64,000 bases of DNA, taken from contig NC_068982.1 of the NCBI RefSeq assembly GCF_001194135.2, positions 37,469,357 to 37,533,356 on the forward strand, in the 5' to 3' direction. The notes beneath the pieces are model-generated. The model made no database searches, had not been told where the DNA came from, and saw nothing but the letters and a program-made list of their open reading frames with translations. The stretch's first letter is position 1. Each line of letters opens with the position of its first letter. This stretch comes from Octopus bimaculoides (Eukaryota). The position numbers were made by a program, and so were the translations under genes. Below are positions 19,266-50,534 of this stretch, one piece after another.

Positions 19266-19307
<42 letters not shown>

Positions 19308-19745
19308 NNNNNNNNNNNNNNNNNNNNNNNNNNNNNNNNNNNNNNNNNNNNNNNNNNNNNNNNNNNNNNNNNNNNNNNNNNNNNNNNNNNNNNNNNNNNN
19401 NNNNNNNNNNNNNNNNNNNNNNNNNNNNNNNNNNNNNNNNNNNNNNNNNNNNNNNNNNNNNNNNNNNNNNNNNNNNNNNNNNNNNNNNNNNNNNNNNNNN
19501 NNNNNNNNNNNNNNNNNNNNNNNNNNNNNNNNNNNNNNNNNNNNNNNNNNNNNNNNNNNNNNNNNNNNNNNNNNNNNNNNNNNNNNNNNNNNNNNNNNNN
19601 NNNNNNNNNNNNNNNNNNNNNNNNNNNNNNAACAACCCACATAAACACTAACATCTGTATCACTCTTAACCTTACACTGATACAGTGTAAGGTTAAGAGT
19701 GATACAGATGTTAGTGTTTATGTGGGTTGTTCTTCGGATAAGATT

Positions 19746-21086: not shown

Positions 21087-22352
21087 TCATCATTGTTTAA
21101 CGTCTGTTTTCCATGCTGGCATGAGTTGGACGGTTTGACTGAGGTCTGGAGAGCCAGCGGCTGCACCAAGCTCCAATCTGATCCGGCAATGTTAGGATGC
21201 CCTTCCTAACACCAACCACTCCGAGAGTGTAGTGAGTTCTTTTTATGTGCTACCAGCACAGAAGCCAGTCAGGTGGGCCTGGCATCGATCATGTTCGGAT
21301 AGTGCTTTTTATGTGCTACCAGTATGGGGTACTAGCATAGGCCATGTTTGGATGGTGCTTTTTACATGTCACCGGCATGGGAGCCAATTGGCATCAGCCA
21401 CATTCAGATGGTGCTTTTTACATGTCACCAGCACAGGGACCAGTCAGGTGGTCCTGATGTTGATCACGTTTGGATAGTGCTTTTTATGTGCCACCAGCAT
21501 GGGAGCCAGTCAGGGGGTACTAGCATCGGCTACATTTGGATAGTGCTTTTTATGTGCCACCGGTATGGGAGCCAGTCAGGAGGCACTGGCCACAACTACA
21601 ATATTAGTTTTACTTGATTCAACAGGTCTTCTCAAGCATATCATATCGCCCAACGCATAAGGAGTATTCTTAACTGGGTTGGACATGCATAGCTGCAATC
21701 TGACTTTAGTTGCCGGGTCTTCTCAATCGCAGCATATTTCCAAAGGTCTTGGTCTCCTGTCATTGCTTCTGTGAGGCCCAATGTTTGAAGGTCATGCTTC
21801 ACCACCTTATTCCATCTCTTACTGGGTCTACCTCTTCCACAGGTTCGTTCCACACTAAGGAAGTGGCACTTCCTCACACAGCTGTCCTCATCTATACATA
21901 ACACATGACCATACCAGCGCAGTCGTCTTTCTTGCACACCACATTTGATGCTTCTTATGCCCAACTTTTCTATCAGGGCTCTTACACTCTGTAGTGTATG
22001 CACACTGACATTACACATCCAGCGAATCATACTAGCTTCATTTCTTTCAAGCCTACACATATCCTCTTTAGTCATGGCCCATGTTTCACTGCAATGTAGC
22101 ATGGCAGTTCACACACATGCATCATACAGTCTACCTTTCATCCTGAGCGAGAGGCCTTTTCCTGCCAGCAGAGGTAGGAGCTCCCTGAACTTTACCCAGG
22201 ATATTCTTATTCTAGCTGCTACATTCTCAGAGCAACCATGCCTAGGTAGTGGAAGCTATTGACTACTTCTAGTTTCTCCCCCTGGCATGTGATGGAATCT
22301 GTTTTCTGTACATCTTCAGTGTTTATTGCCCCTGTGCATCTGCCACACACAA
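21087..22352 (-). mobile_element. RTE LINE, 5'-truncated, with six-unit 3' UTR repeat
   Basis: ORF 21641-22102(-) MLHCSETW...RRLRWYGHV; tail (CAT)n. Confidence 0.92.
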
Positions 22353-32219: not shown

Positions 32220-33545
32220 TTAAAAATAGATGGAAACAAAACATTACCTATTATGAATACTCAAGAATCAGCATTAAATACCACCACCACCACCATCAAC
32301 ATAATCAAATTCATATACACAAATATATGCATGCCGTCATCAACATTATCAAATGTCTTTTAGAATTGGCAATTATAACCTTAATGTCATTGGTTGGTGT
32401 GCTTATCTTATCTACCACATTAGTTTGTCAATGCCTTTAGCCTGTATTTCTCTTCCTCCATCTAATTATCTCCGTAGCAACTAAGTATCCAGTTGATATT
32501 GCCTTCATATGTGTCTATTGGATGCTGCTGACATATGTTATGATTGTCTTTTTCAATCACTGATTTTCTTTCATTTTGTTTAATGTCCAAAGAATTTTCT
32601 GTATTCAATTCAGTACAAAACCCATTTCCATTGTTGTAGACACTTTATATATATGTGTGTGTGTGTGTGTGTATTTATTAAACTGCACATAAGGATACTT
32701 TTTATGTAGGCTTGGAGTATCTTCTGTCTTAAAAAAGAAAGATATTCCAAACCTCATCTCAACTCTTTTATTTCATCTTTGAAGTTGTTGCTTGCAGTGA
32801 CTTTAAAGCCCACAGTCCCATTTAAATTTCTCATTTTGCCTTTATCAATGACAATGGCAATGTGAGTTTCTCCACATTATCTTTCACTTGCAAAATATCA
32901 GCCAAATCTCCCTCAAATTTTTCCAATTTTTCAAAGACTAATTGAATAATGTTGTCTCTAGATGCTGTACTTCTAAATAAGTGACCAAATAGTTACAACT
33001 GAAGTGTCTTTGATAATAAACATATCTTATCACCTAATGACCTGAGGCTAAATGATAACTGATTGGCTTGCTAGCTTAATTATATTCTTAGAACAAAAAG
33101 TTTGACTGTTCTCCACTCATGTTAAACTAATTCAGGATCTAATCTACGTCTCTCTCATTTAAGATTAATGGACACACTAGAATGGTTAAAAGTCCAAAAT
33201 TACCTTTTAGCAAAGACAAAGAACTTTATTTTGAATTCTAATAAGAGAGAGCTGTTTCTCTAACTTGATGCGCACCCCTCAATGTTCATTTTTGAAGCAG
33301 TGTATAAAACCGTCAGTAATTCTCCTCACTGAACATGTGGTTTTAATTATGAAAAGAGTGTAAGAAAATCTCCAGAAAATTTCATGGACTTAGGGCTTTA
33401 TTTCAGGAATAGGATCCTCTTTGCAGAGATGTTTTTAATTTTGAAAAGAGTTTTCTAAAAAGAAATAGGTTTGACGTCTTTGTAAAAATAAATATTAAAT
33501 GCCTTTAACTTTTTCTCTTTTAATAATAATAATAATAATATATGT

Positions 33546-33704
33546 GCAGGCGTGGCTGTGTGGTAAGTAGTTTGCTTAGTAACTACATGGATCCAGGTTC
33601 AGTCCCACTGGGTAGTACCTTGGGCAAGTGTCTTCTACTATAGCTCCGAGCTGACCAAAACCTCGTGAGTGGATTTGGTGGACGGAAACTGAAAGAAGCC
33701 TGTC

Positions 33705-33741
<37 letters not shown>

Positions 33742-33868
33742 TATCTGTGTGTCTGTCCCCTCACCGTCGCTTGACAACCAATGATGTTGGTGTGTTTACG
33801 TTCCCATAATATAGCGGTTCAGGCAAAAAGAGAGCGATAGGATAAGTACTAGGTTTACAAAGAATAAG
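33546..33868 (+). mobile_element. SINE family A
   Basis: Well-preserved head, (AT)n(AC)n and tail running into a short gap. Confidence 0.88.
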
Positions 33869-33878
33869 NNNNNNNNNN

Positions 33879-33912
<34 letters not shown>

Positions 33913-34754
33913 GTTATTTCATTAAGATCACAGTCATTGTAATTACTGAAATTGATATTTATACATCAGATAATTTTAAGTTTATTTTTTAATGTTTCAC
34001 TTGATACCCTTTCCCACCCCTCTCCTATTTTCTTATATATATATATATATATATAAAAGAACTAGACAAAAATAATTGATAATTTCTTTTAAATAATGAA
34101 ATAATCTTTCATGTACAATGATTTATTTCTATTCAGCTTGTCTGTAGTTTACCGAAGAGATAGATTGAGAGAGAGAGAGAGAGAGACTGCAGATATTGCC
34201 AGAATTAATATATTGGCATATGCACAACGTGTATGTGTGTGTTTATATATAGAGAGAGATACACACATATACAACATGCGCACATACACTATCAGATTTG
34301 TTATCCTCCATTAAGTTGTTTTGTTTTAAGAGGAACAACAGTTACAAGTCGAGCGAACTGCTTTCTATTGCTGTATTATTGCTTGTTTTGCAGGACCGAT
34401 AGCCAGCTAGCAAGCTAACTGACAGCAGCGGGTCTGGTTTATAATCAGCTATTATTAGATTGGCTGGTCGACTTCTACCACGTACTACTACCCAGTCTTA
34501 AACAATTTATGTAACTTCTGTCGAAAATCTATCTATCCAAATTATCCTCAACTGTAACAGATCTTTGTAAATTATATTTTGAAAACGATTCAGCGTTTGT
34601 GTATCTTTGTAATTCTTTTGCTGGAAAAAAATATATAGAAAAAAAAGATACCTCTGAACCTGTACTATGGGAAATTTTCTGCACTATGAGAAAAAATCTA
34701 TTTTATTGAATATGTATTAACTGTCGTTAGCCAACCTGACAAAGCCTCAACAAG

Positions 34755-36295
34755 ATGGCGACTGAGTGGCATAAGGTGGTCCAACCTAGTAGTAATCTGA
34801 CTGTTGTCGATAATTCAAGTAAACAAACTACTGAAGATAAACACTGTCAGAAAACGAAAGATAGTACTCAATGGGGGGTACGAGTATTCACCGATTTTTG
34901 CAATGAAGTTGGTTATAATGTGGAGTCTGCGACCCAAGATGTGTCATTATTATGTCAGGTATTGAAGCGATTATATGCTGGAGCGCGAACAAAAAAATGT
35001 GAACTTTATCAGCTCACAGCTTTCCGTTCTCTTCGTTATGCACTCAAACGACACTTTGAGGAAACTCTCAATCTGGATATTATTAAAGGAGATGCTTTCG
35101 TCGAAGCGAACGAATCCTTTGTTTTTATGGAGAAGCGTATTAAAGCCGAGGGCAAAGGCCTGATACGACATTACCCCCCTGTCGAAGAGCAAGACATGGC
35201 TCGTTTAAAGGAATATTTTAAAGCAAACATGCAGAATCCAACTCCACGGGAACTTTTGGAGTATGTTTGGTTTATTTTGCAATATTACATGTGCAGACTG
35301 GGAAGAGATGGACAGACAGAATTGAAAATAACTTCATTTGTTATTCGGACTGATGCTCAGGGAGAGCGGAGCATTGTTCAAAATGAATCTGAACCTCTGG
35401 ATGGAAACGGGGAAAATGATGAGGAATTAGCTGGAGGGCTAATACCATCGTTGAAAGGAGATGTGCTCTGTCCGGTGAGGGCATACGAGTTGTATATTTC
35501 TAAGCTGCATCAGGATTTTGATAGACTTTTCCAAAAACCTAAAAAACTGGTTGATTCTAGTCAACCGTATTGGTTCGATCGCATTCCGTATGGTAAAACT
35601 CCTCTGGGTGGTATGATGCCTACTCTAAGCCACAAAGCAGGACTGTCCAAACGTTACACTAATCACAGTTTGAGAGCTACGGCTATAGAGAAATTACTGT
35701 GGGGTGGCATAAACAGAAAAGATGTTCGTGCCATCAGTCAGTTATTCGGACAGCCAACATCTGTTTCACAGAGAAAGAAGATGGCATCTATTCTTAGTAA
35801 CATTGCTGGAGAGCAAAGTACATCAGCAGTAGCAGCACCCTTCTTGGAAGAGGCTCGATTAAATTCTAAGATCACGTCTAACAAAAGGGTAAATAATTTC
35901 AGAAATGAATTTCAACAACTCTCAAATAATTCTGCTTCCTTATCGCAGAAAAAGAATATTAATCTCCTCACTCCATCAGCAATATCATCTCTAAATACTT
36001 CGTGTTTACCAAAATCTAACACTACGAGGCCGCCTCTTTCAACAACCGGAGATTCTAGCGAAAAATCTGTCAATTGGAGAGAACCAGTTACAAACAGAAG
36101 ACAACAAATAAGTTCCAGTGAGGCAAAACACAACTTACGGTGTTTACAAAGTTTACATTTTGGAAGAGGGAGAGAATCGAAAGAAAAAAGTTCTAGCAGA
36201 ATTGAAACTCAGGAAGAGAATCGTGTTGCCGACCAAAGTTCAGAGACATCCTCCTTTATGATTACAGATGTGCATTCTTGCGCCAACTCTTTCAC
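34755..36295 (+). CDS. Crypton-type tyrosine-recombinase-like (DUF3504) coding exon; unspliced ORF would end at 36299 (514 aa)
   Basis: Uninterrupted ORF with good start context (CAAGATGG). Motifs STQWGVRVF, SLRYALKRH, EGKG..HYPP, VWF..YMCRLGRD, CPVRAYELYISKL, LFQKP, YTNHSLRAT. Its stop codon lies inside a GTAAGC donor (AC|GTAAGC, phase 2). Confidence 0.9.
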
Positions 36296-36971
36296 GTAAG
36301 CATAACTTTTACACGATCGTCCCCAGTCTCAAGATTTTTGTTATACAGAACAATTCTTATATTTTAAAACAAGTCTTTTAATTATGCACACACGCATACA
36401 CCATACATGCAATAAACACACACACACATATAATGTTTGTATGTCAAACCAAAATTATCGCACGTGTTTTCTACGATGGATTCGGGTTGACCAATGTCAT
36501 GGAGTGGAGGTTGGTAGTCGGAAACTGCAGAGGTCCGTCCTGTGTGTGTGTGTGTGTGTGTAATGTAGTGTTTGTGTTTATGTACTAGTAATTCAGCCTT
36601 GTCACACGCTTATTTCGCTTGAGAAATACTTTAAAGATACATGTGTGTGTCTAATGTTTAGTGACTTTCACTCTAACAGTTGAATACACTTTGTTGCAAC
36701 TGACATATATATGTACGTGTGTGGTGGTGCTTTCTTAGAAGGGGTTCAATGTTCACTTCTCGCTTGTATGTTTCACTTTGGGCCGGAGGAGTGGGGTACC
36801 TACCCTTCTTGTTACCAACCACTTTACAGAATGCATTGTGTGCGTTTTTCGGGGCATCAGAACTAACGACATTGGCATGTCCTCTTGACCCTCCGTTGTT
36901 TTGACTGGATGCATTTTATGATGGTACAGTTAGTTTGCTTCGTACCCTATAAGTACTCACTACGGCACTGT

Positions 36972-37099
36972 CATGGTATTAGCTGTCAGAAGTGAAAGTA
37001 GAAAAATCTGACAAGGAACGTTACTGCTGGTTTGAGTTGATTCTTTGGCTACTGACAGCTAATACCATGACTGGCCGGAGCGAGCTATCTGTCTGTCTG

Positions 37100-37156
<57 letters not shown>

Positions 37157-37591
37157 TTATCTATCACTCGAAAGTTATTGGAACAAATTCGACACCTATA
37201 TCCATGCGTTTGAAAACACACAGAGTGGTCCCGAACGCGCAGTCGCGCGTCCGCGCTAGCTAGTCGTGAGTGGTCGATCCTATTATTTTTAAACTTCAAA
37301 CTTCATTTGTTTTCTATTTTGATAAATTCTCTCTGTTGAAAATTATATTTTTATATTTTAAATAATTTGCAATTTCAGAAAATATATTTTTATATTAAAT
37401 TTGCGTTTTCTAATTTGATAAATTCTACGGACACAGGTGAACGAGTGATAGATAGATAGATAGATATAGAGAGATAGTGAGATAGACAGACAGATAGATA
37501 GCTCCGGCTAGTCAGTAGCCAAAGAGTCAACTCAAACTAGCAGTAACGTTCCTTGTCAGTTCTACTTTCACTTCTGACAGCTAATACCATG
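36972..37591. repeat. Large inverted repeat (about 110-bp arms extending into CT/GA microsatellite) around a CpG-rich core
   Basis: 36972-37082 versus 37501-37591 are reverse complements apart from two insertions in the left arm and a few substitutions. Confidence 0.9.
37228..37280 (+). promoter_or_regulatory. CpG-dense promoter-like island with candidate non-coding exon donor
   Basis: 10 CpG in 37231-37280 in an otherwise CpG-poor window; GTGAGT at 37266-37271. Confidence 0.45.
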
Positions 37592-38620
37592 GTATTCATT
37601 CACTCAAGATGTAATGAAGGTGCACTACAAAGGGTAAATTTTGACAAACTTGTCCAAATTTACCTTTAAAAAGTGAAAGAGAAGGGGTACTGAGTGTCTG
37701 ATCAGTTGTCAATGTGTTCTTTATTTTTCTGTGTATAAAGAGAGCAGTCATCATCATGTTCATCAATATCTGTTGAAAAGTCCTACAGCAAAAACAAAAA
37801 AAGCCATCAAAAGCAGTGGTTAAACTACTTCAAATTTATCTCAAATTTCTCAGATATATACTTGGTTGTGTATGTATATATCTATTACTTCAACGTGCGG
37901 CTGACAATACAGTTCGTCTAGCCTTTACATATAAATTCTATTTGTGTTTAATTTAAATAGCAATTTACTGTAAGTTCTTTTTGTGGGCAGAAGAATAATA
38001 GAGTACTTGCCCATCAAATGAGTGGTTAACAAACTGTGGAACATGTCAGGATAATCTCCTTTATTATTCCGAGTACTTGAAGAATAAAAAAATATATTCA
38101 CCACAGCAAAAAGCTTAAAAAATGTAGTTTGTCTACTTGAAATTTATCTTAGGTTTTCTAATCATACACTGCTTAAATATTTATATCTACACCAACCATG
38201 CTGGTATGAATTGGTGGTCAGCATGGTTTAAGTTAGTACATTTGAGGGTGCTGCTATTGTAGATGGGTTGGAAGACTATATCTCACTTGTTGGTTTCATT
38301 CTCAGCTTGGTTTCTATGACCAAATGCCCTTCCTTGTCCCAACTACTTTTCAGAATGTATTGAGTACTTTTTTCAAAGCATCAGTGCTTCAGAGGTAGCT
38401 ATGTCCATGACATGACTGAAGAAACCTCTTGACTCCATGGTTTCTTGCTCATGAACCTGTTTGTAGAGTGGGAAGCATTAAGGATAAGGTAAACAGATAT
38501 GGATAATAGTCATAAGAAGGGTAAGTGAGAAGGGTACTCAGTATTCTGAAGCAAGTATGTACAATCAGTGTATTGTGAGCAAGAGAATAGAGCAGTAACA
38601 GTGGCAAGATGATCCATGTG

Positions 38621-38621
<1 letters not shown>

Positions 38622-38654
<33 letters not shown>
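38622..38654. repeat. (AG)n microsatellite
   Basis: Seen directly. Confidence 0.95.
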
Positions 38655-38655
<1 letters not shown>

Positions 38656-39192
38656 AAGGATATGTGGGTGAAAAGAAACAAGAGTATGGTGGCAGGCAGA
38701 GTGAATAAGAAGAGGGAAAGATGAAGGTTAGAGTAAAGTCTACTGGACATAATAGGTCCAATGTTGTGTGGTCTCCTAAAGATGGGTTAACAAATGGTGA
38801 GTATGGGGGCCTATACAAATAGGCAGATAAGGATGATGGGAAAAATGAAAGTGTACTAGGTAGAAGAGGTTGGGTGATAAGGATGGTGGGAGGGGTCCCA
38901 TACATATGAATGGCTAGGGGTGTCAGAGAAATGAAATAATGTCACAGTACAGAAGAAACAGTGATAGTCAACTAGGCAGTAAATATACCTACACACCCAT
39001 GCAAACAGATACACATAAAATATGTTATACCTCTCAGTCTGTATCATTACCATTATCCTTGTGAATTTCAATTTGCCAAGCTTACATTGCTGAATAGGTC
39101 TTCTCCAACACTGCATATCACCAATCAACACTGTCCTTTGTCGTCTCTTGCATAAGGTTTCACACAATTTCCATCTACAAAATATCACTCAA

Positions 39193-39546
39193 TCGTGGCA
39201 CTCCGTTGGTTACGACGACAAGAGTTCCAGTTGATCCGATCAATGGAACAGTCTGCTCATGAAACTAACATGTAAGTGGCTGAGCACTCCACAGACACGT
39301 AGTTCTTGGGGAGATTCAACGTGACACAGTGTGTGACAAGGCTGGCCCTTTGAAATATAGGTACAACAGAAACAGGTTGAAAGAGTGAGAGAAAGTTGTG
39401 GTGAAAGAGTACAGCAGGATCTCCCCCCCCCCCCGCTGGAACCTCGTGGAGATTTAGGTGTTTTTACTCAATAAACACTCACAACACCTGGTCTGGGAAT
39501 CAAAACCGCGAGTCTGCTACCCTAACCACTGGGCCATTGTGCCTCC
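39193..39546 (-). mobile_element. tRNA-derived SINE, family C
   Basis: Reverse strand starts GGAGGCACAATGGCCCAGTGGTTAGGG...TTGATTCCCAGACC (A/B boxes), followed by a non-tRNA body. Confidence 0.7.
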
Positions 39547-40249
39547 ACATCACTCAATAGACATTCAGTAAACCAAGACTGAGGTAAAAGACACCAACCT
39601 AAAAGTGTTGAACTCAAAATGACATGATTAAAAAGCAAATTTCTTAACCTAAAGGTTATATATATGTATAATTTTATACATGAATAATTTTATATGTCTG
39701 TTTTTAAGTTTATTTGTGTGCATATGTATAAGTGTGCTCAAAACATTTTGCTGGAGTTCTAGACTAGTAACATCAAATTTCTTGTAAGTTAGTGACCATG
39801 GAGAGGATGTGAACCTTAAGTTGTAGTGGGCAGGACATCACACATTTCTATGACAATGAAATACTGTCACTTGTGTAGTTTCCTCACTTGCCAAAGCACA
39901 TGGAAAGTATAGTTTATATATGTGACTATACTTCTATTTTTGTTTGTGTGTGTGTGTACTATTATTCTCAACCTTTATTACAATCTTTTCATCCTCCTGT
40001 GTTCCACACAATTCTATTTTTACCCTATTTGAATTAGTCTTTCCGAAGCAAGTAGTAGTTACTGGTTAGACATTTTATGTCCTTTAATAACTATTTATTA
40101 GCTAACCCTAATTCTAAAATATGTCTATCTTTGATCTCTGTTAAACTCTGTTGCACTTCCATTATTACCTATACTGTTTCTCTCTCTAAGTCATGTACAC
40201 TTTCACCCAGGTATATATATATATGTGTGTGTGTGTGGATTTTTTATGC

Positions 40250-40780
40250 TTCTTTTATTTTTCAAAATTAAGATAAAGTTCTTTTTTAATCTAAAATATA
40301 CTCTCCTTCATTTTTTACAATGCTCTTCCATCTATCTGGTAGATTTGCAAGGCCCTTCTTCCAAAATTCACTTGTCTGTGACAAAAAATACTCCTCCAGT
40401 ACTGTTCTAACCTCGTTTACAGAGTTCATATTTTTTCCATCCAAATGATTTTGAAAACTGTGGAATAAATGATAATCAGATGGAGCAATGTCCAGCAAAT
40501 ATGGTTGGTGGGGGATTGTTTCCCATTCAAACTGCTCCATCCTTTGGAATGTCATCCTTGCTGTTTGTGGCCGAGCATTATCCTGATGGAAGAACACATT
40601 TCATCTTGAAACCAAAGATGGTCGTTTTTCTTCTAGCGCTGGTCGTTTTTCTTCTAGTAGTTTTGTTCACTCAGAATTGTTTGTAACTGTTGCATAATTA
40701 AAGGCCCTGATTACAGTAAGTCAGCTTCTGTAATAGAACAACCAGACTTGTGCTAAAACATTTTTGGGGTCATAGGCTTA
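40250..40780 (-). mobile_element. mariner (DD34D) transposase 3' relic
   Basis: ORF 40286-40597(-) FFHQDNARP...PYLLDIAPSDYHLF...EGEYILD; same family as 60828-62000. Confidence 0.92.
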
Positions 40781-42094
40781 ATAAAAAGTACACTAGCTCT
40801 GAGTGCATTTAGTGTAGTTGTTTTTGTTGCAAAGTCCAGATCTTCAGGTTTGTGGATGGCACCAATATCTTGAGGTACAACTTCCAACTGCATCTGCCAT
40901 TGTGTAGTACTACTTCATTACTGCATGTGTACATGTTGAAAAGGTTTTCCAGTGGGCTTGTCACTAGATACCATAGGAAACTGAAAATTTGAGTATCATA
41001 TTGGGAAGCTGCCCTATCACATGGCACATAGTCGTATATTTTCTGGAACCTGTGCTCAACTAGTTAAGTAGTTTGAGTGACTTTCCTCATTGACCACTAA
41101 ATCAGTTCTTCAATCTTGCCAGTTGAGAAACCTCTGCAAATGTCCTAGGCAATGCTAATTCTCCTATGATTAGCTTATAGAAAAGTAACTGCAATATTCC
41201 ATCAGAATATACACGCTCAACTGATTTTCACAAAATTAGCTTTTACAAACCACACAAAAAACTTGCAGAATGTCAGGTATGTCTTCCATCTGAAACATGA
41301 CTCTGTTGCATTCCTTTTAAAAAACATACAAAGTATCTTGTTTGTCTCTCATTTTTCAAGATGATTTATACTTCACCTCTTAGACGCTATATCTCTACAT
41401 CATTGATAACCCTTTGTACTTCTTTTGCTTTTAATCCACGTAGCCATATGTAAGGATGGATTTTAGGCATATACCTAGGACTTTACCATCTTTTAAAAAG
41501 TTAAGAAAGGCACTTAAATAAAACAGCCCTAAATACATATGTCTGGAAAAGATGTGATGGTCACAATGGAGTGCTTTTAATCACAGATCTGCTGGATCAG
41601 AATTGACCCAGATAAACAACAATGATTATATAATGAATGCAAATCATGTCCAGTCTGTTTAAGCTTATCTTTCACCTGTTAACATTTATAGTCCTTAATA
41701 ATGCATTAGTAACGAGAAACTTTCCAAAATCTGCTGTCTTGGCCACTTTAGGCATATCTTCAGGACTAAACTAAATAGGTTGCAAAGGAATTACAGCTCT
41801 CTCACACTGATCAAGGTTACTTCACTCATACAATTCTCAACAAAATCTCTATACATACATAATTGGCATACTAGCAACAATATAACATGGGAAAATTTCT
41901 CAGAGTTGTCTTCTGTATGAAAAAACAAAGCATAACTAGGGATTAACATAATGTAGTGAACCTAAAAAAAATGTTACATCAATTAAAATTAAAAATTACG
42001 CTGAAGAAAATCATTAGTGTGAATAATAATAATTATTGTCAAAGCAAGGAAGACAACTCTGGAGTCCAAATTTGTTGAAAATTGTTGTATCATC

Positions 42095-42440
42095 TTGTAC
42101 TTGTTTCAGTCTTTGGACTATGGCCATGCTGGGGGTACTCCCTTGAAGGGTTTAGTCAAGCAAATCGACCCCAGTACTTATTTTAAGCCTGTTACTTATT
42201 CTGTTGACCCCTTTTTGCCAAACAGTCAAGTTATAGAAACATAAATAAACCAACACCAGTTGTCAAGCAGTGGTGGGGAACAAACAAAAACACAAAAGCA
42301 CACACATGTGCAATAGGGTTCGTTCAGTTTCCATTTATGAAATCCACTCACAAGGTTTTGGTCGGTCTGGAGTTATTGTGGAAGACACTTCCATAAGGTG
42401 CCACACAGTGGGATTGAACCCAAGACCTGCTACACCTGCA
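42095..42440 (-). mobile_element. SINE family A
   Basis: Reverse complement of tail (TTTCAGTC.TTGGACT.TGGCCATGCTGG) through head (AAGGTGCCACACAGTGGGATTGAACC). Confidence 0.8.
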
Positions 42441-43050
42441 CCTATACTTTGATCTTTGGTATATACAGTGACAACTCTAGAAATGTTTTGATCTTAACAG
42501 GTTTCTTTAGCTGACCGTAATCTTACAGGCCTTAAAATGAATGTGAAAATATATAGAAACAAACACTAATACGTAGTTCCTGAGTATACTCTGCATCATG
42601 CTCAAACATTTGAACAGATCTCTCAGTTATAATGCAGTTACTAGTGCTTCATAGAAATCTGCAATTACTGTCCAATTTTAACACCAACTTACAAATACCT
42701 AGGCTAATGTTTAAAGCACTTCACTTGGTTAATCCTTTTCAAGCAGGTTATTGAGTGTAGTTTGTTGTTCAACAGACCTTTAATCAAAGACATTGCAACT
42801 AATGCATTTTCAGACAGTAGAATATACTCTGACAGGAATCTACCTACTATACCTAGCAGGCTAAATTACTGTGTAGCTGTTCAGTTAGCTTATTGGTTGA
42901 ACAACTAGGTGCAATATAAAGACCTATTGCTCTAGATATCCTCACCTCTGCCTAAAAGATGACCACAGAGTGATCTCAGACATATGTGATTGTTGATGTT
43001 GTTTCACCTCAGGTCAGCCTTGATCATACATACTCATGTATGACTGGAAG

Positions 43051-43345
43051 TATTGCAGCCATGATTCATCATCATTATTTAACACCTGGCATGGATTGGA
43101 TGGTTTGACAGGATCTGACTAGCCTAAGAGCTGTATTGGTCTCCAATGTCATTTGCAGTCATGATTCATGGTCTCCAATGTCATATTGCAGCCATGATTC
43201 ATCATTATTTAACATGCTGGCATGGGTTGGATGGTTTGACAGGATCTGACTAGCCTGAGAGCTGCATTGGTCTCCAATGTCATCTTTGACAAGGTTTTTG
43301 TGACTGGATGCCCTTCCTAATACCAACCACTTTACAGAGTGCAAT
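43051..43345 (-). repeat. Tandemly duplicated RTE-type tail fragment
   Basis: Two copies of about 100 bp (43051-43151, 43184-43282) around a 32-bp unit made only of the copy's two ends. Confidence 0.8.
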
Positions 43346-44475
43346 GCCTCATCTTTTGCATATCTAAGACTGCATTATCCAATGTATCTGGAAGCTACTT
43401 TTGTAGCAGGTTGAAACAACCAAATAGTCACCCTTTAGTTGTATAGGATGTTCTGTGGGAGTCTTGGTCCAGTCTGTTATTTGTATATCTTTTATTGTTG
43501 TTTAACCCTAGGTCTGCTTTGACCAGGTAGATGTATCGTTGAAGGCATTCCAACTATGACTATCCCACCTTTTTTCATACATAGTATAGCTAAGACTCTA
43601 TTATCCAAATGTGTCATGTTTGTTAAGCTGATAAAGTATTTGTTGGATATGTGGCTACTATTTCTAGCAGGTCAAGGAATTGTGTAGAGGTTTCCTATTA
43701 ATCCAGTGTTTCTTGTTTCATGTTAGAGCCAGCATTTTAAAAGTTTCTTTTCTCATATAGAATTGAATTGTTTGTTAATGTGTGAATATAAAGAAATAAG
43801 TCAAATCCTTTGCTTCTATTGATAAGTTATATAGTGCCTGAAAGGACTCTTTCATTGCAGAAGCCATCATGTATTCCTTGAATAAGATTTGTGAATTATT
43901 GTGGTTGAGTGAAGTTATCTGAATTCTTTTTGCAAGTTTCAAAGAGGAATATGTGAGTTGGTGATATCAAACATAAGTCCTTTTCAGGGATTTTGAAGGC
44001 ATGTATGAGAGAGTGTTGAGTTCTTGTAATGCTGTTTTTTGGGGGGGGGTTTTGGTTGAATTTTTAATATAAATTTGCCCAGTTAACACATTCTTTGAAT
44101 TTAGTATTGTTAGTAAGAGAACTTGATGCTTTGTTTGCTTGAACCCCACTCTATCAAGCAGACTTCTTATCAAAGGTGTTCTAGACAAGATTATCCCATC
44201 ATGTCTGTAGATATAATGTATCTAGAACTACTTTATCCAATGTATCCATTTTGTTTATGATGGTATACTATTTTATGAGGGAGATATAGCAAGATGCATG
44301 ACCTTACAGAAGCTTTTCTGTTCATTCATGATATAAGTTGAGTGCAGTGTGTTCTTCAAGCTCTTGGTATCTCTGGTGTATGCATGGGATTTTGTTGGGT
44401 CCTGAGGTTTTTGAGTTTATTGTGTATTTTCTATTTCTGTCTTTGTATAACTTTTAGTTATTACTATTATTATTA

Positions 44476-44835
44476 AGGCAGCAAGCTGGTAGAATCGTTA
44501 GCGCACTGGACGAAATGCTTAGCAGTATTTTGCCCGTCACTACGTTCTGAATTCAAATTCTGCCAAGATCGACTTTACCTTTCATCCTTTCGAGGTCGAT
44601 AGAATAAGTACCAGTTGAACACTGGGGTCAATGTAATCAGCTCATCCCCTTCCCCCAAATTGCTGCTCTCGGGAGCAAAATTTGAAACCATTATTGGCGT
44701 AAGGAAGGGCATCTAGCTGTAGAAACTTTGCCAGATCAGATTGAACCTGGTGCAGCCTTCTGGCTCACCAGTCCTCAGTCAAACCATCCAACCCATGCTA
44801 GCATAGAAAGCGGACGTTAAATGATGATGATGGTA
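44476..44835 (+). mobile_element. SINE family B (44476-44690) followed by an RTE 3' tail (about 44696-44835)
   Basis: AAGGCAGCAAGCTGGTAGAATCGTTAGC head; then GGCGTAAGGAAGGGCATC...GGACGTTAAATGATGATGAT. Confidence 0.8.
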
Positions 44836-45715
44836 ATGATTATTTTTGTTTTTTTTTCTAAAGTGTTTGATAAGCAAGCTTGCTTGTTGGGGGTATGCAT
44901 ACGTAACTTAAAGCTGTTATGATGTGATATTGTGTAACTTACAGATTTTGCTAATTTGTGTCCTGTTTTACTGCTTGTTTTGTGATTTATCATAGATACA
45001 TATTTTTAACAGCTTTCTTTTCTCTGGTTCATTTTCTATTTAGTTTCTCAATGAAATTTAATTCTGTTATGTATGGTATTAGTGTTTTGTTTAAGGTGGT
45101 TGTTCCTGGTTTTTTATCAGGCTGACTATGTCACTTGGGTAATTTGGATTTTATATTTTTATGCATCTTTGTGGGATGAATGTATGGAATGAATTATCTA
45201 TGTTTATGTATCATTGTGTCTTGCAATGTGATTGCCATTCTATTTTAAGGAATTTTCTGTCAGGTATGGGCAACCTATTTTGAGAAGCAGACTGCATGAG
45301 ATGTTCATCATCAGGTGGGTCACACTACTAAAAAGACTGAAGGCAATTTTTCATTTAGGTGTGCCATTCAGAAAGTCCTGTAGGCTGCAGTTTACCCATG
45401 ACTACTCTATGATTACTTGACCTGGTAACAGCCTAATTTCTTCCAAACTACATCCTATTGTCTTTAAAAGTGGGTTACCCTGGATAATACAATCATGGAT
45501 TGTATTATCTACTGGAAAAAGAGATGGGTTGGTTTCAGCTGAAATACCTTCAGAATGATGGTCATGAAAGTAAAACTTAGTTGTGCCCTTAAAAGTCTAT
45601 GTATGTTCTAAAACTGTTATTTGGAATGGGTGTAATCTTTTTAGTTGTTACAATAACTAAATTAGGATGCGGCTAGTTTATTCTTTGCAAGCATTAGTTA
45701 CATTATCATCATTGT

Positions 45716-46150
45716 GCTGTGCGTGAGAAGACCCGGCAAGCCAAGTAAGATCGTTGCCAGTGCCCCGGGACTGGCTCTTGTGCGGGTGGCACATAAGATG
45801 CACCATTTTGAGCATGGCCATTGCCAGTACCGCCTGACTGGCTTCCGTAGGATTTTCGAGCGAGATCGTTGCCAGTGCCCCTGGACTGGCTTGTGCGGGT
45901 GGCACATAAAAGACACCATTTTGAGCGTGGCCATTGCCAGTATCGCCTGACTGGCCTTCGTGCAGGAGACACGTAAAAGCACCTACTACACTCTCTGAGT
46001 GGTTGGCGTTAGGAAGGGCATCCAGCTGTAGAAACTCTGCCAAATTTAGATTGGAGCCTGGTGTTGCCATCCGGTTTCACCAGTCCTCAGTCAAGTCGTC
46101 CAACCCATGCTAGCATGGAAAGCGCACGTTAAACGATGATGATGATCATC
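45716..46150 (+). mobile_element. RTE LINE 3' end (last codons, repeat-containing 3' UTR, tail)
   Basis: GCTGTGCGTGAGAAGACCCGGCAAGCCAAG matches 5490-5520; about four repeat units; (GAT)n tail. Confidence 0.9.
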
Positions 46151-48052
46151 ATCATCATCTCATTTAGGCAATTATACAGCTACTGGATAGTCTAGACAAA
46201 ACTAATTAAATGTCAGGTCCTGGCATTTGTATGCCTTAATTACTGGAATTAATAAATCTAGATTCAGGGTAATGTTAAGTGTCTGAAGTTGTTTTGTTGA
46301 GTTAAATAACTTTTTGTTTATTGAATTTGTGATAAGATTATTATAGACAGATTGCAATAAACTTTGTGTTGATTGAAATGCAGGGTCCATTCAGAAAGGT
46401 GAATAAATGTTGTTTTAACCCCAGATTAACCCTGAATGAGTAGATATCTATTCAAAGCTGTTCCATCTATGATCAACCTATTTTTATTCAGGCATAATGT
46501 ATCTAAATCTACATTGACCTGTGTCTTTCCTCTTTTTAAGATGTGAGAGATTTCACTGTCATTTCTTGTAGGCTCAGCAACAAATGGTAGTGAACAATTT
46601 TAAAGCTGATCTAAGTTATTGAGACAGGTTTGACAGTATGTTTATTAGATTATTCAATAATTTTCTTCTGTAGTTTACTTATATAACATTTGTTTATCGT
46701 ATTTTTTTTATTCACTTGCAAGATCTTTCATGTCCATGTATTTCTCATTTTCAAAATTGAAACAGTTGCATAAGATAATTATAAATGATACTTAAGTAAT
46801 CAGTTACTGTTACATAGCATTCGCAGAAATATGCAACCATGTTTTACTTCTGTTGACATAACATTTAAAAGTGAAATCAAAGCATTTTATTTCATACATC
46901 ATGAGCAGTATGGTCACTGCGAATCTATACATATTCTATCTATAAAAGTGAATGCAGTGTTTCTGTCTGGAATCCTAAGCTCTTACTTTATCTATTTCCC
47001 CCTATTTTTACTTGCTATTGGAGCAAGCTTTTGATTTATGGTAGCATTATGTTGTAAAATATTGTTGACAGAATTTTATATTAAATGTAAATTTCACTAT
47101 TCATGTATTATGTGCTTATATATGTGCATGCACACACACATCTATATTTACTGTTATGTCTCAAGCTACTGCTATCTAGCACCTTTGGATGATCTCTACT
47201 CAACCACTACACAACTGCTACTCGACTTCTACTCAACACTCCTACCATGGCCAGACTACCTCTATTTATATGTCTTGGGAGATCCTACTTCTTCGCCGGG
47301 GGGCATCGACACAACATTTACAGTTATACATATGTGTGTGTGTGTATATAAGTAAAAGAAAACATAGAAGTGATAGTTTCTTTATATAAAAGTCTTTGAA
47401 TTTTCTTAAAGAAATGAGATGAAATATTACTTAAATTCTTTTAGTATGTTTGTTTTGTCTAGCACTGGAGAGTCAGTTTCTGTTTTTATAACACACACAT
47501 ATGAGAGAGGAAGAGATTTCTGTGAATACATTTCATTAATGTTCTGTAACTTTAACATTTGTTTGAACATGGTATTGCTTTACACATTATATTATGTTTA
47601 TTTATTTCTCTGTGACCTATACACCAGAAAAAGGTATGAAAGATGTTGTTCTGCTCTGGGCTGATAAAGTTTGGTAGAATGTAGCAGAATAATGTATGAT
47701 ATAATTGTCTTTGGTGTGATGATTTTCAAATAAGTGGCTTAGCACTCATCTCATCTGAATTGTTTCTAAAGCTGGATAGATGAATAATGTTGCAATTGAG
47801 TTTTACTTCATGTTTTAAGCCTCTTCATTTTTATTTTGAGCATTTTGTGGTAGTTATTGTAAAAATGAGACCTGACTACAAAATAAGCTGGGTGAGGGTA
47901 ACAGTTACTACCCTTCAGCTATGTTTGGTGCAAATATTTGTGACTACTAAAATGTTGACAATTGAATTGCAATATTTTAGTTTATTTTTAATGTTTTTAT
48001 CAATTTATATCCAATATCCATCGTATTATATTTCATTTCTCTTTATATACAG

Positions 48053-48215
48053 TGAGCAGAATACGCCAACAACTTTTATGAAAACAGTTGAAAACCCTAC
48101 TCATTCATATGTTGTGCACAAACATCAAGGCCACATGCTCTCCAATATGGCCAATCTTTGGAAAAAAGGTAAACTCTGTGATGCTTCCATTGGAAATGGA
48201 ACAATGAAAATTATG
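48053..48215 (+). CDS. BTB/POZ module, exon A (own ATG at 48078; 25 nt upstream open in frame)
   Basis: Acceptor TTTCATTTCTCTTTATATACAG| and donor ATG|GTAAGT. HMLSNMANLWKKGKLCDASIG is the BTB N-terminal helix/CD motif and joins VHKVVL in the next exon. Confidence 0.88.
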
Positions 48216-48439
48216 GTAAGTATTAAATGTTAAATCATGATTATCTAACTCTGTATCTATTCATGCACACTTGTTTTTTTTTTTATTATTTAAGTATTTC
48301 CCTTTAGTATGTTAAGATCAGCTGCTAATCCAAATCATGAGTACAGACATTATAGCACATAACAATAAGTATTTTAAAGCCAAGTTTCCCTGCTAAATTA
48401 GGGATTAACTTTATGGTCCCACTGACAGTCTTCTTCATT

Positions 48440-49525
48440 ATTAATATGAGATAATAAATATGAGACAAATGACAGATCCTTTCAGGGTGAAGGCCCTGCT
48501 TGATATGTAGAAATGCTGTTGGAAGAAACTCCAAATGGTGTACTCAATACAAGTTATGGACGCATAAGAGGTGCAGTGATATCACTGGGAAATTAACAGA
48601 GAAAGTAGTCTTTACATGTGGCTGATGTGCAAGTACACTAAACACTAGGAATGTTAAAAAAAATAGACTCCTTCAAATGTCAGGAGGTGATCCTTAGAAG
48701 TAGTTGACAGTTTCCGTTACTTAGGTGAGGTTGTTCTGAAAATATAGCTGCTAGAATAAGAATGCGCTGGGTAAAGTTCAGAGATCTGCTACCTCTGTTA
48801 GTAATGAAGGGTCTCTCTCTCAGAGTAAAAGGCAGATTGTATGATGCCTGTGTATGAACATTTATGCTACGTGGCTGTGAGACATGAGCTGTGACTATTG
48901 AGGACATGTGAAGGCATGAAAGAAATGAAGCCAGATGGGTAATGTCAGTGTGCATATACGACTGAGTATAAGTGATTTGAGAGAAAAACTGGGTATACAA
49001 GGCATCACATGTAGTGTCCAAGAGAGAAGACTGCATTGGTATGGTCATGTAATGCTTATAAATGCAGGTAGATGCATCAAGAAATGCTGATCTCTTATTG
49101 TGAAGGGGTAGACCCAGGAAGACATGGGATAAAGTGGTGAAAAAGGATCTTCAAACCTTGTGCCTCACTGAGGGACGACAGGGAACTGAGACTTCTGGTG
49201 ATTTGCTGTGCTTGAGAAAACACATCAAGCTAAGTAAAATTGTGGTTGTCCTTGCATACAGGCATGACCTCTGCATCCCTTTTCAGCTGAGTGATCCTAA
49301 TCTTGCGGGCTCATGGGTGCTGGTGCCACATAAAAAGCACCTATGCCAGTACCATGTAAAAGCACCCAGTACACTCTGTGAAATGGTTGGCATTAGAAAG
49401 GGCATCCAGCTGTAGAAACCATACCACAACAGACATGGAGCTTGGGCAGCTCTTCAGCTGGCTAGCAACTGTTAAACCATCCAACCCATTGCCAGCAAAG
49501 AAAACAGATGTTAAAAGATGATGAT
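48440..49525 (+). mobile_element. RTE LINE, decayed, inside the BTB intron
   Basis: Remnants of SGRW...HKRCS, AWVKFRDLLPLL, RLHWYGHV and the tail. Confidence 0.8.
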
Positions 49526-50534
49526 AATATATCATATTGATACTTTGTAACATTGGAGTCCACAATGTGAAGTGGGTAAAAGAAAAATTAAATGTAATGA
49601 AAGCAATCAAAATTTAAAAATTGAAATTGATAATAATATTATTATTTTAAATCACTTGCATTTGCCAAACAAGCCAGTGAATTGTTTTCAGTGTAATCAA
49701 CAACGGATTTGTTTGAAATTATGAATAGTGTTTATGATATCTGAAATCCCATGGGCTCTTTGACTGGTTAAGAAAAAAAGAAAAAGAAAGGTAACTAAAA
49801 CTAAACCATGTAAACAAAGAGACAACTATGTATGTGTATATATTATCATTGTTTTAATGTCCACTTTTCCATGCTTTCATGGGTCAGACAGAGTTTATTG
49901 AGGTAGATTTTCTATGGCCAGATATCCTTCTTGCTGCCAACCCTTACCTGTTTCTAAGCTTGGTAATATTTCACCACAGCCAGACATGTTTCCACAGAAT
50001 ATTGAAAATAAAGGACATTCAATTACAGCAATCACGCAACGTCATGACATGAAGACACAAGTTTACACACATATGAAGACACAAGTTTACACACATATAC
50101 ATGTGTATGTAACATGCATGCACATACGTACATACATAAATACATAATTTTTATTATTTTTTGTGAGACAGATTCTCAACATACCTTGTATTAGAAGTAT
50201 ATAAAGTCCTATGTTTCTAGCCTATGTAAATTAAGAGCAAGTATCTGAAGACATGTAATATTGTGATTATTCATGATCATGCATTATTTATTGGAATACA
50301 AAGGATTATTCATCTCCTCTTTTCTTCCTTAATTCTAAAATAGTTTCCTAATTTCCTAAGTCAATAATGTGTTAATGTTTCCAATGAAAGAAATGTGTTA
50401 TGTCTCTGTACACAAAATATATTTTTAAATGATTTTTTTTGGAGGGGGGGGGGTTCAGTTAGGCTTTTAATGTGATTCTTTGAAATATTCTGCTTTTATT
50501 GTTTTTCTATAAATATGTGTTCTTTCTTTTCTAG

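Follow-up and report, generated by a model that had tools for sequence, protein, structure and literature searches.

The locus considered here raises the question of whether a long open reading frame (ORF) that resembles the tyrosine recombinase of a Crypton transposon is a mobile element, an enzyme, or part of a host gene. The ORF lies in a 64,000-nucleotide stretch of Octopus bimaculoides DNA (the window, to which all positions refer). The original prediction described an intact ORF at 34755-36299 and a Crypton-derived host gene which has kept the recombinase fold and lost catalysis. The ORF was found at exactly these coordinates (514 aa, + strand), and homology, predicted fold, active-site substitutions and selection all support the proposed origin and fate. 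The host gene turned out to be larger than expected: the ORF is only coding exon 1 of LOC106873459, which has three coding exons and an 894-aa product (XP_014776313.1, 100% match); the spliced CDS yields the full 894 aa.

The ORF is very probably the first coding exon of a coleoid-cephalopod host gene, in which a whole CryptonA-type recombinase has been co-opted, its exon being spliced to others that encode a POZ-type BTB domain. The identity of the product as a domesticated, catalytically dead Crypton-BTB fusion is highly probable. The gene is organised as follows:

34265 to 34754, + strand: 5' UTR part of the first coding exon (RNA contigs run unjoined into the ORF)
34755 to 36295, + strand: coding exon 1, aa 1-514, Crypton-derived recombinase-like module and disordered linker (ORF, match to XP_014776313.1, CDS translation)
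36296 to 36301, + strand: splice donor GTAAGC, containing an apparent TAA stop at 36297-36299 (RNA contigs end or join at 36295)
36296 to 48052, + strand: intron 1, 11.8 kb, repeat-rich (joint of 36295 to 48053 in RNA contigs of runs X1, X5 and X9)
48053 to 48214, + strand: coding exon 2, aa 514-568, pre-BTB extension and start of the BTB (RNA joints)
48215 to 50533, + strand: intron 2, between exons 2 and 3, splitting the BTB
50534 to 51515, + strand: coding exon 3, aa 569-894 and TGA, rest of the BTB, then disordered acidic tail (RNA joints)

The product of exon 1 consists of two predicted recombinase-like domains and a linker:

34842 to 35147, + strand: N-terminal helical domain, aa 30-131, corresponding to the recombinase core-binding domain and to the Pfam 'QRICH1 domain' of relatives (AF2, Foldseek, PF25561)
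35187 to 35801, + strand: catalytic-fold domain, aa 145-349, with the DUF3504/tyrosine-recombinase fold, now inactive (Pfam, AF2, Foldseek)
35802 to 36295, + strand: low-complexity disordered linker, aa 350-514, ending in the conserved FMITDVHSCAxxFT at 36255-36284 (pLDDT, composition)

Pfam finds DUF3504 at aa 161-291 of the ORF and a weak Phage_integrase match at aa 287-326. The DUF3504 (PF12012) score is marginal: the cut-off of 29.7 bits is passed by the ORF (30.5) but not by the full protein (28.9). The AF2 model of the N-terminal 350 aa has a two-domain Cre-like fold (pLDDT 86.5, and above 90 in the helices of aa 32-131). The best Foldseek match of the aa 1-350 model is QRICH1 in the Zincore complex (9hjt_H, E 6e-8), followed by Cre (about 30 chains, about 330 aligned columns over both domains); XerA, IntI, Flp, XerH and lambda Int are also matched. 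Structure prediction therefore agrees with a recombinase fold. The module has in common with Cre, XerA and lambda Int the overall C-shaped two-domain fold and the H-x-x-R box, but it is only 11-18% identical to them and its active site is incomplete, so it is not a recombinase.

The closest sequence relatives are autonomous CryptonA elements (Crypton-1_SK, Crypton-1/2_SP, P0004 and P0005), with 35-38% identity in the core. Indeed, phmmer matches recombinases with intact motifs at E values of 1e-44 to 1e-20 (50-71% query coverage), and 153 representative proteins match at E<1e-30. Among 34 aligned relatives, PF12012 is found in 33, PF00589 in 31 and PF25561 in 19. The octopus gene falls inside CryptonA in a neighbour-joining tree of recombinases (numpy, 500 bootstraps), whose overall resolution is weak. 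Autonomous CryptonA proteins are laid out like the product of octopus exon 1, with two domains and then a long low-complexity tail; they differ in keeping the R-K-H-R-H-Y residues and a C-terminal 'NC.ITINYN' motif, and have no BTB. Crypton-type domains in other animals are also fused to SCAN, KRAB plus THAP, C2H2, zf-FCS and ATF7IP.

The catalytic columns were located in a 34-sequence alignment with Crypton-like recombinases, using MAFFT and HMMER alignments. The near-invariant R, K, H and Y columns correspond to L182, L215, L330 and F331 in octopus, so that four of the six catalytic residues are replaced, while H304 and R307 are kept:

35298 to 35300, + strand: Leu182 at catalytic Arg-I, where the xxRGxE box reads CRLGRD (alignment)
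35397 to 35399, + strand: Leu215 at the conserved Lys of the 'KNHQ' hairpin motif (alignment)
35664 to 35675, + strand: retained H304-x-x-R307 box, YTNHSLRAT (in the alignment, H304 is invariant and R307 near-invariant)
35742 to 35747, + strand: Leu330-Phe331 at the His/Trp-III and nucleophile Tyr columns, beside an 8-aa deletion (alignment)

Leu182 is placed opposite XerD R148 and Cre R173 in accordance with the register of an alignment given in PMC3212892 (Additional file 4). The 'KNHQ' motif is lost, and its loop has a low pLDDT in the AF2 model. The original prediction had pointed to Leu182, in CRLGRD where CRRGRE is usual, and to H304-S-L-R307 as a kept HxxR; both assignments hold in the computed alignment, which adds that none of Arg-I, Lys, His-III and Tyr is present in a protein that matches intact Crypton-like recombinases at 1e-44. 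It had also proposed that the GH...Y segment is missing. The segment is in fact present, shortened by eight residues compared to the decapodiform orthologues ('ISQRRSDSGLENYGHSTSV' in decapodiforms, 'ISQL--------FGQPTSV' in octopus), and the Tyr is replaced by Phe. The exon 1 region shows zero mismatches to RNA and DNA contigs of seven runs; the substitutions are therefore not assembly errors.

Proteins of the same architecture are found in O. sinensis (XP_029656788.1), a third octopus, a cuttlefish (transcript P0018) and another decapodiform. The O. sinensis gene model begins about 27 kb upstream of its own ATG. GAB1597306.1 of Argonauta hians has another N-terminus, and its match covers only the linker, BTB and tail (aa 389-894). 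The three-exon structure is common to the octopod and decapodiform loci, the exon 2 and 3 homologues sit downstream of exon 1 in a decapodiform genomic contig, and the GTAAGC donor is kept at both decapodiform loci; the assignment to the same locus rests on the gene's own structure. The gene is thus old enough to predate the octopod-decapodiform split. Among the three octopuses, 316 codons show 0 nonsynonymous changes against 13-17 synonymous ones (about 60 expected if neutral), and the dN/dS is 0.037 between Sepia and the second decapodiform. The BTB part (0.05-0.09) is also constrained, and the linker has a dN/dS of 0.24-0.46, except that its last 16 codons are unchanged at the amino-acid level both in the three octopuses and in the decapodiform pair. 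Values of dN/dS this far below 1, in a gene whose octopod and decapodiform orthologues share one exon structure, show that purifying selection is strong.

All species sampled in this gene's lineage carry other residues in place of Arg-I, Lys and His-III. The decapodiform orthologues (Sepia and the second decapodiform) retain the Tyr and the H-x-x-R box, and the Tyr loss appears to be specific to the Octopus species sampled, the Argonauta record being without the recombinase half. The protein is predicted to be unable to cleave strands by the tyrosine-recombinase mechanism because Arg-I, Lys and His/Trp are gone and, in Octopus, also the Tyr. The module might nevertheless still process DNA (nicking, topoisomerase-like relaxation, binding or resolution of junctions) by means of non-canonical residues, at least in the decapodiforms that keep the Tyr. 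The invariant H-x-x-R box, the Tyr of Sepia and of the second decapodiform, the extreme purifying selection on the former catalytic domain and the existence of a paralogue with an R-H-R-Y tetrad (lineage B, below) would be consistent with this. However, three catalytic residues are replaced throughout the lineage, selection is not relaxed in Octopus despite the Phe and the 8-aa deletion at the nucleophile, and the described animal DUF3504 genes are all non-catalytic (PMC3212892; PMC13465315), which makes residual activity quite improbable. The shortening of the Tyr segment in Octopus without relaxed selection argues that the nucleophile Tyr is dispensable for the conserved function.

The dead module is spliced to a BTB. 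Single contigs from three octopus RNA runs (X1, X5 and X9) join 34265-36295 to 48053-48214 and 50534-52500 with canonical GT-AG sites and equal depth across the exons, and the reading frame is unbroken over both junctions. The TAA lies inside the GTAAGC splice donor, which makes the 514-aa ORF an exon rather than a complete gene. The contigs extend exon 1 without a joint to 34265 (X1), 34323 (X16) and beyond 34300 (X17); the true transcript start is farther upstream or in an upstream exon. The 3' UTR extends to at least 52500.

It could be argued that the fusion is only apparent, created by annotation or read-through, and that the locus in reality makes two proteins, a recombinase-like one of 514 aa and a separate one with the BTB. 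A stop codon does follow exon 1 directly when the intron is retained, the database ORFs P0002 and P0016 end at exon 1, and contigs L002 and L011 continue into the intron. This reading is very improbable given the spliced octopus contigs and their even depth, the zero depth in the first intronic bin past the exon 1 donor in runs X16 and X17, and the full-length spliced fusion transcript present in at least three cuttlefish runs, in frame over both junctions. In addition, three further paralogous lineages have the identical architecture.

The rest of the fusion protein contains the following features:

48153 to 50780, + strand: BTB/POZ domain, aa 548-650, split by intron 2 (PF00651, AF2)
51132 to 51143, + strand: conserved psiKxE motif LKQE in the acidic tail
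51468 to 51488, + strand: terminal PYVVSLI motif of the tail

The low-complexity extension of about 160 aa that had been noticed after the recombinase part is indeed predicted to be disordered (pLDDT below 50 over aa 351-528 in the AF2 model), and 46% of residues 350-514 are S, T, N, Q or P. The BTB had been expected to be of the ZBTB/Kelch type rather than of the KCTD/T1 type, and this is what is found: PF00651 scores 37.5-42.1 bits for a cut-off of 20.5, and it is the sole match, PF02214 (T1/KCTD) giving none in the BTB part even at E<=10. AF2 predicts a BTB fold over aa 529-656 with an N-terminal beta1/alpha1 extension (pLDDT 60-88). A word-indexed search with the BTB half returned cephalopod matches only, and no relatives of this half were detected outside its family. 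Pfam finds no zinc-finger families in the octopus (P0001) or cuttlefish (P0018) protein.

The 'PYPVxLV' tail of the fusions was also considered as a derivative of the Crypton 'PYPV..NC.ITINYN' terminus, with the BTB inserted inside the Crypton protein. The idea was rejected, the resemblance being put down to four residues that agree by chance: an HMM of 42 Crypton tails does not match the fusion termini, and in the reverse search, with an HMM of the fusion tails, Crypton tails scored no better than shuffled databases.

The original prediction also suggested a fusion independent of that of vertebrate KCTD1. In KCTD1 isoform b, one upstream exon encodes a Crypton-derived domain and is spliced onto a BTB gene, as in octopus; this domain is predicted to adopt a two-domain Cre-like fold, lacks catalytic activity and has been strongly conserved (PMC3212892; bioRxiv 10.1101/2024.06.14.599007). 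The KCTD1 BTB is of the T1/KCTD type and forms pentamers, whereas the octopus one is of the POZ type (PF00651), which is usually a dimer. KCTD1 keeps Arg-I and His and has lost Arg-II and Tyr (PMC3212892), while the octopus gene shows the opposite pattern, Arg-I, Lys and His-III being lost and His and Arg-II kept. KCTD1 also has a known BTB-only short isoform, and none was seen for the octopus gene. A word-indexed search for vertebrate relatives returned only invertebrate Crypton-like proteins; the vertebrate sequences were taken from the supplement of PMC3212892, whose extracted PDF text is noisy. The core of the cephalopod protein is 28-30% identical to KCTD1, compared to 35-38% to autonomous Cryptons. 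In the weakly resolved tree, the cephalopod clade is the direct sister of KCTD1 in only 20 of the 500 bootstraps (4%), with intact Cryptons interspersed. The independence of the two fusions is thus backed by the different BTB type and the opposite residue loss, and the tree does not contradict it.

A common descent of the two genes, the octopus one being the cephalopod orthologue of KCTD1 isoform b and both deriving from one ancient bilaterian DUF3504-BTB fusion, would account for the matching domain order (Crypton domain, linker, BTB), for the Crypton part lying in one exon (PMC3212892), and for the placement of both in the same broad CryptonA subgroup with Saccoglossus CryA1_SK. It has a very remote chance of being correct in view of the differences in BTB type, residue loss, identity and tree position given above. 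Besides, Kojima and Jurka place the KCTD1b insertion after the vertebrate KCTD1/KCTD15 duplication (PMC3212892), and among the matches examined no fusion is assigned to a non-cephalopod, lineage D having no assigned source.

The idea that the ORF is an autonomous or recently active Crypton lying by chance upstream of an unrelated BTB gene, to which its intron-less coverage of a whole Crypton-type protein (both domains and a long tail) and the repeat-rich surroundings might point, has next to no chance of being right and is already refuted by copy number, splicing and selection: according to PMC3212892, Cryptons of this type occur in multiple copies, but exon 1 is single-copy (contig depth 12.4, equal to that of the unique flanks, with no variant letters in one DNA run), has no second copy within the 64-kb window and no terminal repeats around it beyond microsatellites in the flanks, has four of six catalytic residues replaced, is joined to the BTB exons in RNA contigs of three runs, the depth being zero directly after the donor, and has syntenic orthologues in both octopods and decapodiforms, the octopus sequences showing no nonsynonymous differences.

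The domesticated fusion gene is not alone. It belongs (as lineage A) to a small family of Crypton-BTB fusions, of which lineages A to C are attributed to cephalopods and lineage D comes from run SRR27666076; two members are on record in O. bimaculoides, about 25% identical to each other. Arg-I is replaced by Leu in lineage A and by Gln in lineage C, while lineage D keeps Arg-I and has lost the Tyr. Lineage B (cuttlefish and another decapodiform) keeps the full R-H-R-Y tetrad with a dN/dS of 0.027. Exon 1 ends 35 aa before the BTB in lineage A and about 160 aa before it in lineage B. Lineages A-D are united in 0 of 300 bootstraps of a neighbour-joining tree of the recombinase domain, and the recombinase part of each lineage is nearer to autonomous Cryptons than to the other lineages; the BTB cores are 29-50% alike. 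This non-union is compatible with repeated capture and is also expected from fast independent divergence. Paralogous BTB genes may have captured Cryptons repeatedly. Alternatively, a cephalopod-specific BTB-fused family could have arisen from a catalytically competent founder, and lineage B could be a domesticated recombinase which still cuts or rearranges DNA as a BTB-mediated dimer, a scenario that appears rather unlikely.

As for the role of LOC106873459, other systems offer guidance. The domesticated Crypton genes described so far are mainly KCTD1b, KIAA1958, ZMYM2-4 and QRICH1/WOC in vertebrates or bilaterians and some yeast genes. In QRICH1, ZMYM2-4 and WOC, the dead recombinase fold serves nuclear regulators, and the PF25561 'QRICH1 domain' also occurs at the N-terminus of the relatives of the octopus gene. 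These proteins are only 16-19% identical to the octopus one in the core, retain hardly any of the tetrad, lack the domain's C-terminal part, and have MYM zinc fingers or CARD as partners instead of BTB; they date to the bilaterian ancestor, whereas the octopus gene was found only in cephalopods. According to the title of PDB entry 9hjt, and to Bianchi et al. 2025 as cited in PMC13538652, the QRICH1-SEPHS1 'Zincore' binds zinc-finger factors on DNA.

Regulators that combine a BTB with a DNA-binding domain, such as the ZBTB proteins, have a POZ-type BTB with a beta1/alpha1 extension and psiKxE motifs, as does the octopus protein. ZBTB proteins carry C2H2 fingers after the BTB, whereas the octopus protein has no zinc fingers or other known DNA-binding domain, and its putative targeting module is N-terminal and its BTB central, the reverse of the ZBTB order. 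By analogy, the gene probably works like these regulators. The recombinase-derived module is basic (pI about 9), and the basic clamp could recognise DNA or DNA-bound factors, as QRICH1 does in Zincore. The BTB/POZ would dimerise the protein and recruit partners such as co-repressors or CUL3, and the disordered tail would bear short regulatory motifs (psiKxE SUMO-type sites and the hydrophobic P[YF]PVxL[IV] end). The net result would be a BTB-type regulator of chromatin or transcription in which a dead recombinase replaces the zinc fingers as targeting module. This specific role of a dimeric DNA- or chromatin-targeting regulator, based on fold, charge and analogy, is proposed tentatively.

No mention of a cephalopod or POZ-type Crypton-BTB case was found in the literature searched, and the fusion is apparently a so far undescribed parallel to vertebrate KCTD1. 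It represents an independent molluscan domestication of a Crypton, with the same class of partner (BTB) as KCTD1, another BTB subtype and the opposite decay of the active site. It is therefore a natural replicate for the question of why a dead recombinase fold is retained, for which the QRICH1 Zincore structure suggests the clamping of DNA-bound factors. The paralogous family, with one member whose tetrad is intact, provides, within a single clade, a gradation between proteins that may be active and ones that are clearly dead, in animals which are of interest for the lineage-specific innovation of regulatory genes.

The open reading frame (ORF) at 34755-36299 (+), 514 aa, exists as described in the original prediction, and its translation is 100% identical to residues 1-514 of XP_014776313.1, the 894 aa product of Octopus bimaculoides LOC106873459, annotated as a "BTB domain-containing protein". 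It had been taken for an intact host gene; the ORF is real but is an exon of a spliced gene, not the whole gene. The TAA that closes it falls within a consensus splice donor (CAC/GTAAGC), and the protein continues beyond. The coding exons of LOC106873459, located by tblastn of the annotated protein, are:

34755-36295, + strand, coding exon 1
48053-48214, + strand, coding exon 2
50534-51515, + strand, coding exon 3

The junctions are canonical GT-AG throughout, and the spliced coding sequence translates exactly into the 894 aa protein. Segments 34265-36295, 48053-48214 and 50534-52500 are joined without mismatch within single RNA contigs from three public runs (4315, 3607 and 3676 nt). No intron retention after 36295 was seen in two further RNA runs, where the contigs end at 36295 and the first intronic bin has a depth of zero. 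One contig from a DNA run spans the exon-intron boundary at a depth of 12.4, the same as that of unique flanks; adjacent microsatellite sequence reaches 460-3400 in this run. Exon 1 is therefore single-copy, and no second Crypton-like sequence was found elsewhere in the window. The repeats beside the ORF are microsatellites only.

Intron 1 contains a structure of ~620 bp (36972-37591) which looks MITE-like: its inverted arms (36972-37056 and 37511-37591) are 96-100% complementary and surround a CT/GA microsatellite. Intronic and flanking repeats (45546-46179, 33500-34133 and 36670-37303) have a word depth of up to 2.5e5 in RNA assemblies, and are therefore very high-copy and transcribed. A 174 aa ORF at 7232-7756 (+) has a clear THAP domain (PF05485, E 2.3e-11); it may represent either one exon of a THAP gene or the remnant of a P element. 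Three related ORF fragments, at 421-900 (+), 5040-5522 (+) and 21641-22102 (-), have "QERRLRWYGHV.RMDEDSCVKKC...GRGRPRKTW" in common and no Pfam match. They represent a dispersed repeat, possibly LINE-derived, since the tails of LINE ORFs are similar. Runs of N (assembly gaps) at ~650-800, ~19300-19640 and 33873-33878 give artificial "X" ORFs.

The predicted Crypton-derived DUF3504 fold is borne out. The Pfam DUF3504 score is marginal: against a cut-off of 29.7 bits, the ORF reaches 30.5 and the full protein 28.9. Phage_integrase matches the H-x-x-R region below threshold. Recombinases with intact motifs are matched by phmmer at E 1e-44 to 1e-20, and 153 proteins reached E<1e-30 when 1.84 billion representatives were searched exhaustively. 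The aligned relatives carry DUF3504 (33/34), Phage_integrase (31/34) and an N-terminal "QRICH1 domain" (19/34). Judged from these sequence matches, the homology of the N-terminal half to Crypton-type recombinases is unambiguous despite the marginal Pfam score. The AlphaFold2 model of residues 30-350, built from the alignment of relatives, is confident (mean pLDDT 86.5, pTM 0.72) and consists of a helical N-terminal domain and a mixed alpha/beta domain. Among PDB structures, Foldseek ranks QRICH1 of the Zincore-ZFP91-DNA complex first (9hjt_H, E 6e-8), followed by about 30 Cre chains over ~330 columns, then by XerA, IntI, Flp, XerH and lambda Int. The complete two-domain recombinase clamp is kept in the predicted structure.

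The relatives share the motifs xxRGxE, ExxKNHQ, YTNHSLRAT and SGHxSxxSLxxY in computed alignments. Where R, K, H and Y are nearly invariant among them, octopus has L182 (35298-35300), L215, L330 and F331, while H304 and R307 (35664-35675) are conserved; the loss of Arg-I, the retention of H-x-x-R and the coordinates of both had been correctly predicted. Arg-I falls in the same register as in an alignment published for Cryptons, XerD, Cre and lambda Int (PMC3212892, Additional file 4). In the orthologues from the cuttlefish and the second decapodiform, CRLGRD is present too, the Lys motif is missing and Q-R stands for G-H, but "LENY" is kept, so three of the six catalytic residues were gone before the octopod-decapodiform split. 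In the three Octopus species, eight residues are deleted and Phe stands in the Tyr column, so loss of the nucleophile came later, in those Octopus species that were sampled. The GH...Y segment, thought to be missing, has indeed lost its Tyr but is shortened and substituted rather than absent. With these residues gone, the product lacks the chemistry for strand cleavage.

Residues 548-650 match PF00651 (37.5-42.1 bits, cut-off 20.5), and no T1/KCTD-type BTB is matched even at E<=10, as the original prediction anticipated. In the full-length model, the second folded module (529-656) has a beta1/alpha1 extension, a feature of dimeric POZ domains, and is flanked by predicted disorder (351-528 and 657-894). 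A word-indexed search detected no relatives of the BTB half outside cephalopods.

Kojima and Jurka showed that KCTD1b arose when a Crypton inserted upstream of KCTD1, later than the KCTD1/KCTD15 duplication, and that neither the Tyr nor the second Arg survives in any vertebrate DUF3504 gene (PMC3212892). The cephalopod gene shows the opposite pattern, with the first Arg lost and the second kept, and its BTB is of a different subtype. A neighbor-joining tree (172 core columns, including their published sequences) gives the cephalopod clade 100% support and places it in the CryptonA subgroup, where KCTD1 and the Cryptons of Saccoglossus and sea urchins also fall; it is the direct sister of KCTD1 in only 4% of replicates. 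Identity in the core is highest with autonomous Cryptons (35-38%), lower with KCTD1 (28-30%) and lowest with ZMYM/QRICH1/WOC (16-19%). The tree alone is poorly resolved but, taken together with the identities, the residue losses, the BTB subtype and the taxonomic distributions, it supports the predicted fusion independent of KCTD1, hence convergence.

The full architecture is found in an 894 aa orthologue from O. sinensis and in a cuttlefish transcript encoding 903 aa, which clusters with Acanthosepion pharaonis fragments; a third octopus is represented by exon 1 alone. In a second decapodiform assembly, the same donor is followed 2-5 kb downstream by homologues of exons 2 and 3. For an Argonauta hians record of 697 aa, the match is confined to aa 389-894 (linker, BTB and tail); we read its different N-terminus as a mis-annotation, the recombinase half being unconfirmed there. 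Over 316 recombinase-domain codons, the Nei-Gojobori method counts 13-17 synonymous and 0 nonsynonymous changes among the three octopuses, where dN=dS would give ~60 nonsynonymous changes. dN/dS is 0.037 between the two decapodiforms; between octopus and decapodiform dN is 0.10 and dS is saturated. The linker evolves faster (0.24-0.46) than the BTB (0.05-0.09). These orthologue and selection tests rule out an active element, a pseudogene or a chance ORF. Together with the single copy and the substituted residues, they support domestication by the host with loss of catalysis, as proposed. Inside the fast-evolving linker, the 16 codons that end exon 1 (SSFMITDVHSCANSFT; 36255-36295 and the exon 2 start, 48053) encode identical residues in the three octopuses, and likewise in the two decapodiforms, with 4 differences between these groups; a short helix is predicted there with low confidence.

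The exhaustive search revealed three more lineages with the DUF3504 + PF00651 architecture, which share ~25-30% identity with lineage A, the window gene. Lineage B comprises the cuttlefish protein P0064 (loci L018 and L021), whose RNA run also yielded the transcript of lineage A; B occurs as well, on a different contig, in the decapodiform assembly that has A. Lineage C is found in O. bimaculoides (LOC106879774; proteins P0078/P0221), O. sinensis (LOC115220336) and O. vulgaris, and lineage D is represented by P0065/P0224 (locus L017). Lineage B (dN/dS 0.027) keeps the whole R-H-R-Y tetrad, with His-III replaced by Gln and an uncertain Lys; C has Gln for Arg-I and no Tyr; D keeps Arg-I and has no Tyr. 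The fusion lineages share a BTB-flanking LWKKGxLCDA...VHKxVL, a psiKxE motif and a C-terminal P[YF][PV][VI]xL[IV]. If there was a single fusion, the founding product had an intact tetrad, which then decayed independently in each lineage. Alternatively, paralogous BTB genes may have captured Cryptons repeatedly, since the recombinase halves of A-D form a clade in 0/300 bootstraps, each being nearer to autonomous Cryptons than to the other lineages, and the BTB cores are 29-50% alike.

Most autonomous Crypton-like proteins (for example P0004, P0049, P0089, P0103 and P0126) have a long disordered tail and then a conserved C-terminal motif, approximately P-x-F-x-N-C-x-[IV]-T-[IV]-N-[YF]-N, which is absent from the cephalopod fusion proteins and of which no mention was met in the Crypton literature searched.

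LOC106873459 thus encodes an expressed, conserved, single-copy protein that joins a Cre-like clamp to a POZ-type BTB and has conserved short motifs in its long disordered regions. If it works like QRICH1 in Zincore (Bianchi et al. 2025, as cited in PMC13538652), the clamp, which is basic (pI 9.0), would act as a recognition module for DNA or a DNA-bound factor. The BTB would dimerise the protein, bringing two clamps together much as in recombinase dimers on inverted repeats, and may also recruit effectors. Acidic runs follow the psiKxE motifs, which we take to be putative SUMO-type sites. BTB dimerisation, effector recruitment and SUMO-type psiKxE sites are established for those motif classes. 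Elsewhere in animals, Crypton-type domains are joined to SCAN, THAP+KRAB, C2H2 and MYM zinc fingers and ATF7IP, partners which all belong to transcription or chromatin regulators, and this supports the general logic of the proposed role. The predicted proteins concerned (P0201, P0114, P0097, P0071/P0090, P0119/P0177 and P0093/P0180) carry SCAN, THAP+KRAB, C2H2 (catfish Neoarius graeffei XP_060793158.1), MYM zf-FCS, the ATF7IP binding domain or a DDE_Tnp_4 transposase; some may be annotation chimeras, and the ATF7IP case agrees with a fusion predicted by Kojima and Jurka (PMC3212892).

Full-text literature searches found KCTD1 as the only DUF3504+BTB fusion discussed, and no DUF3504 fusion described from a cephalopod or with a POZ-type BTB. 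The window gene appears to be a hitherto undescribed, independent domestication of a Crypton in cephalopods, of interest for transposon domestication and for the evolution of cephalopod genomes.
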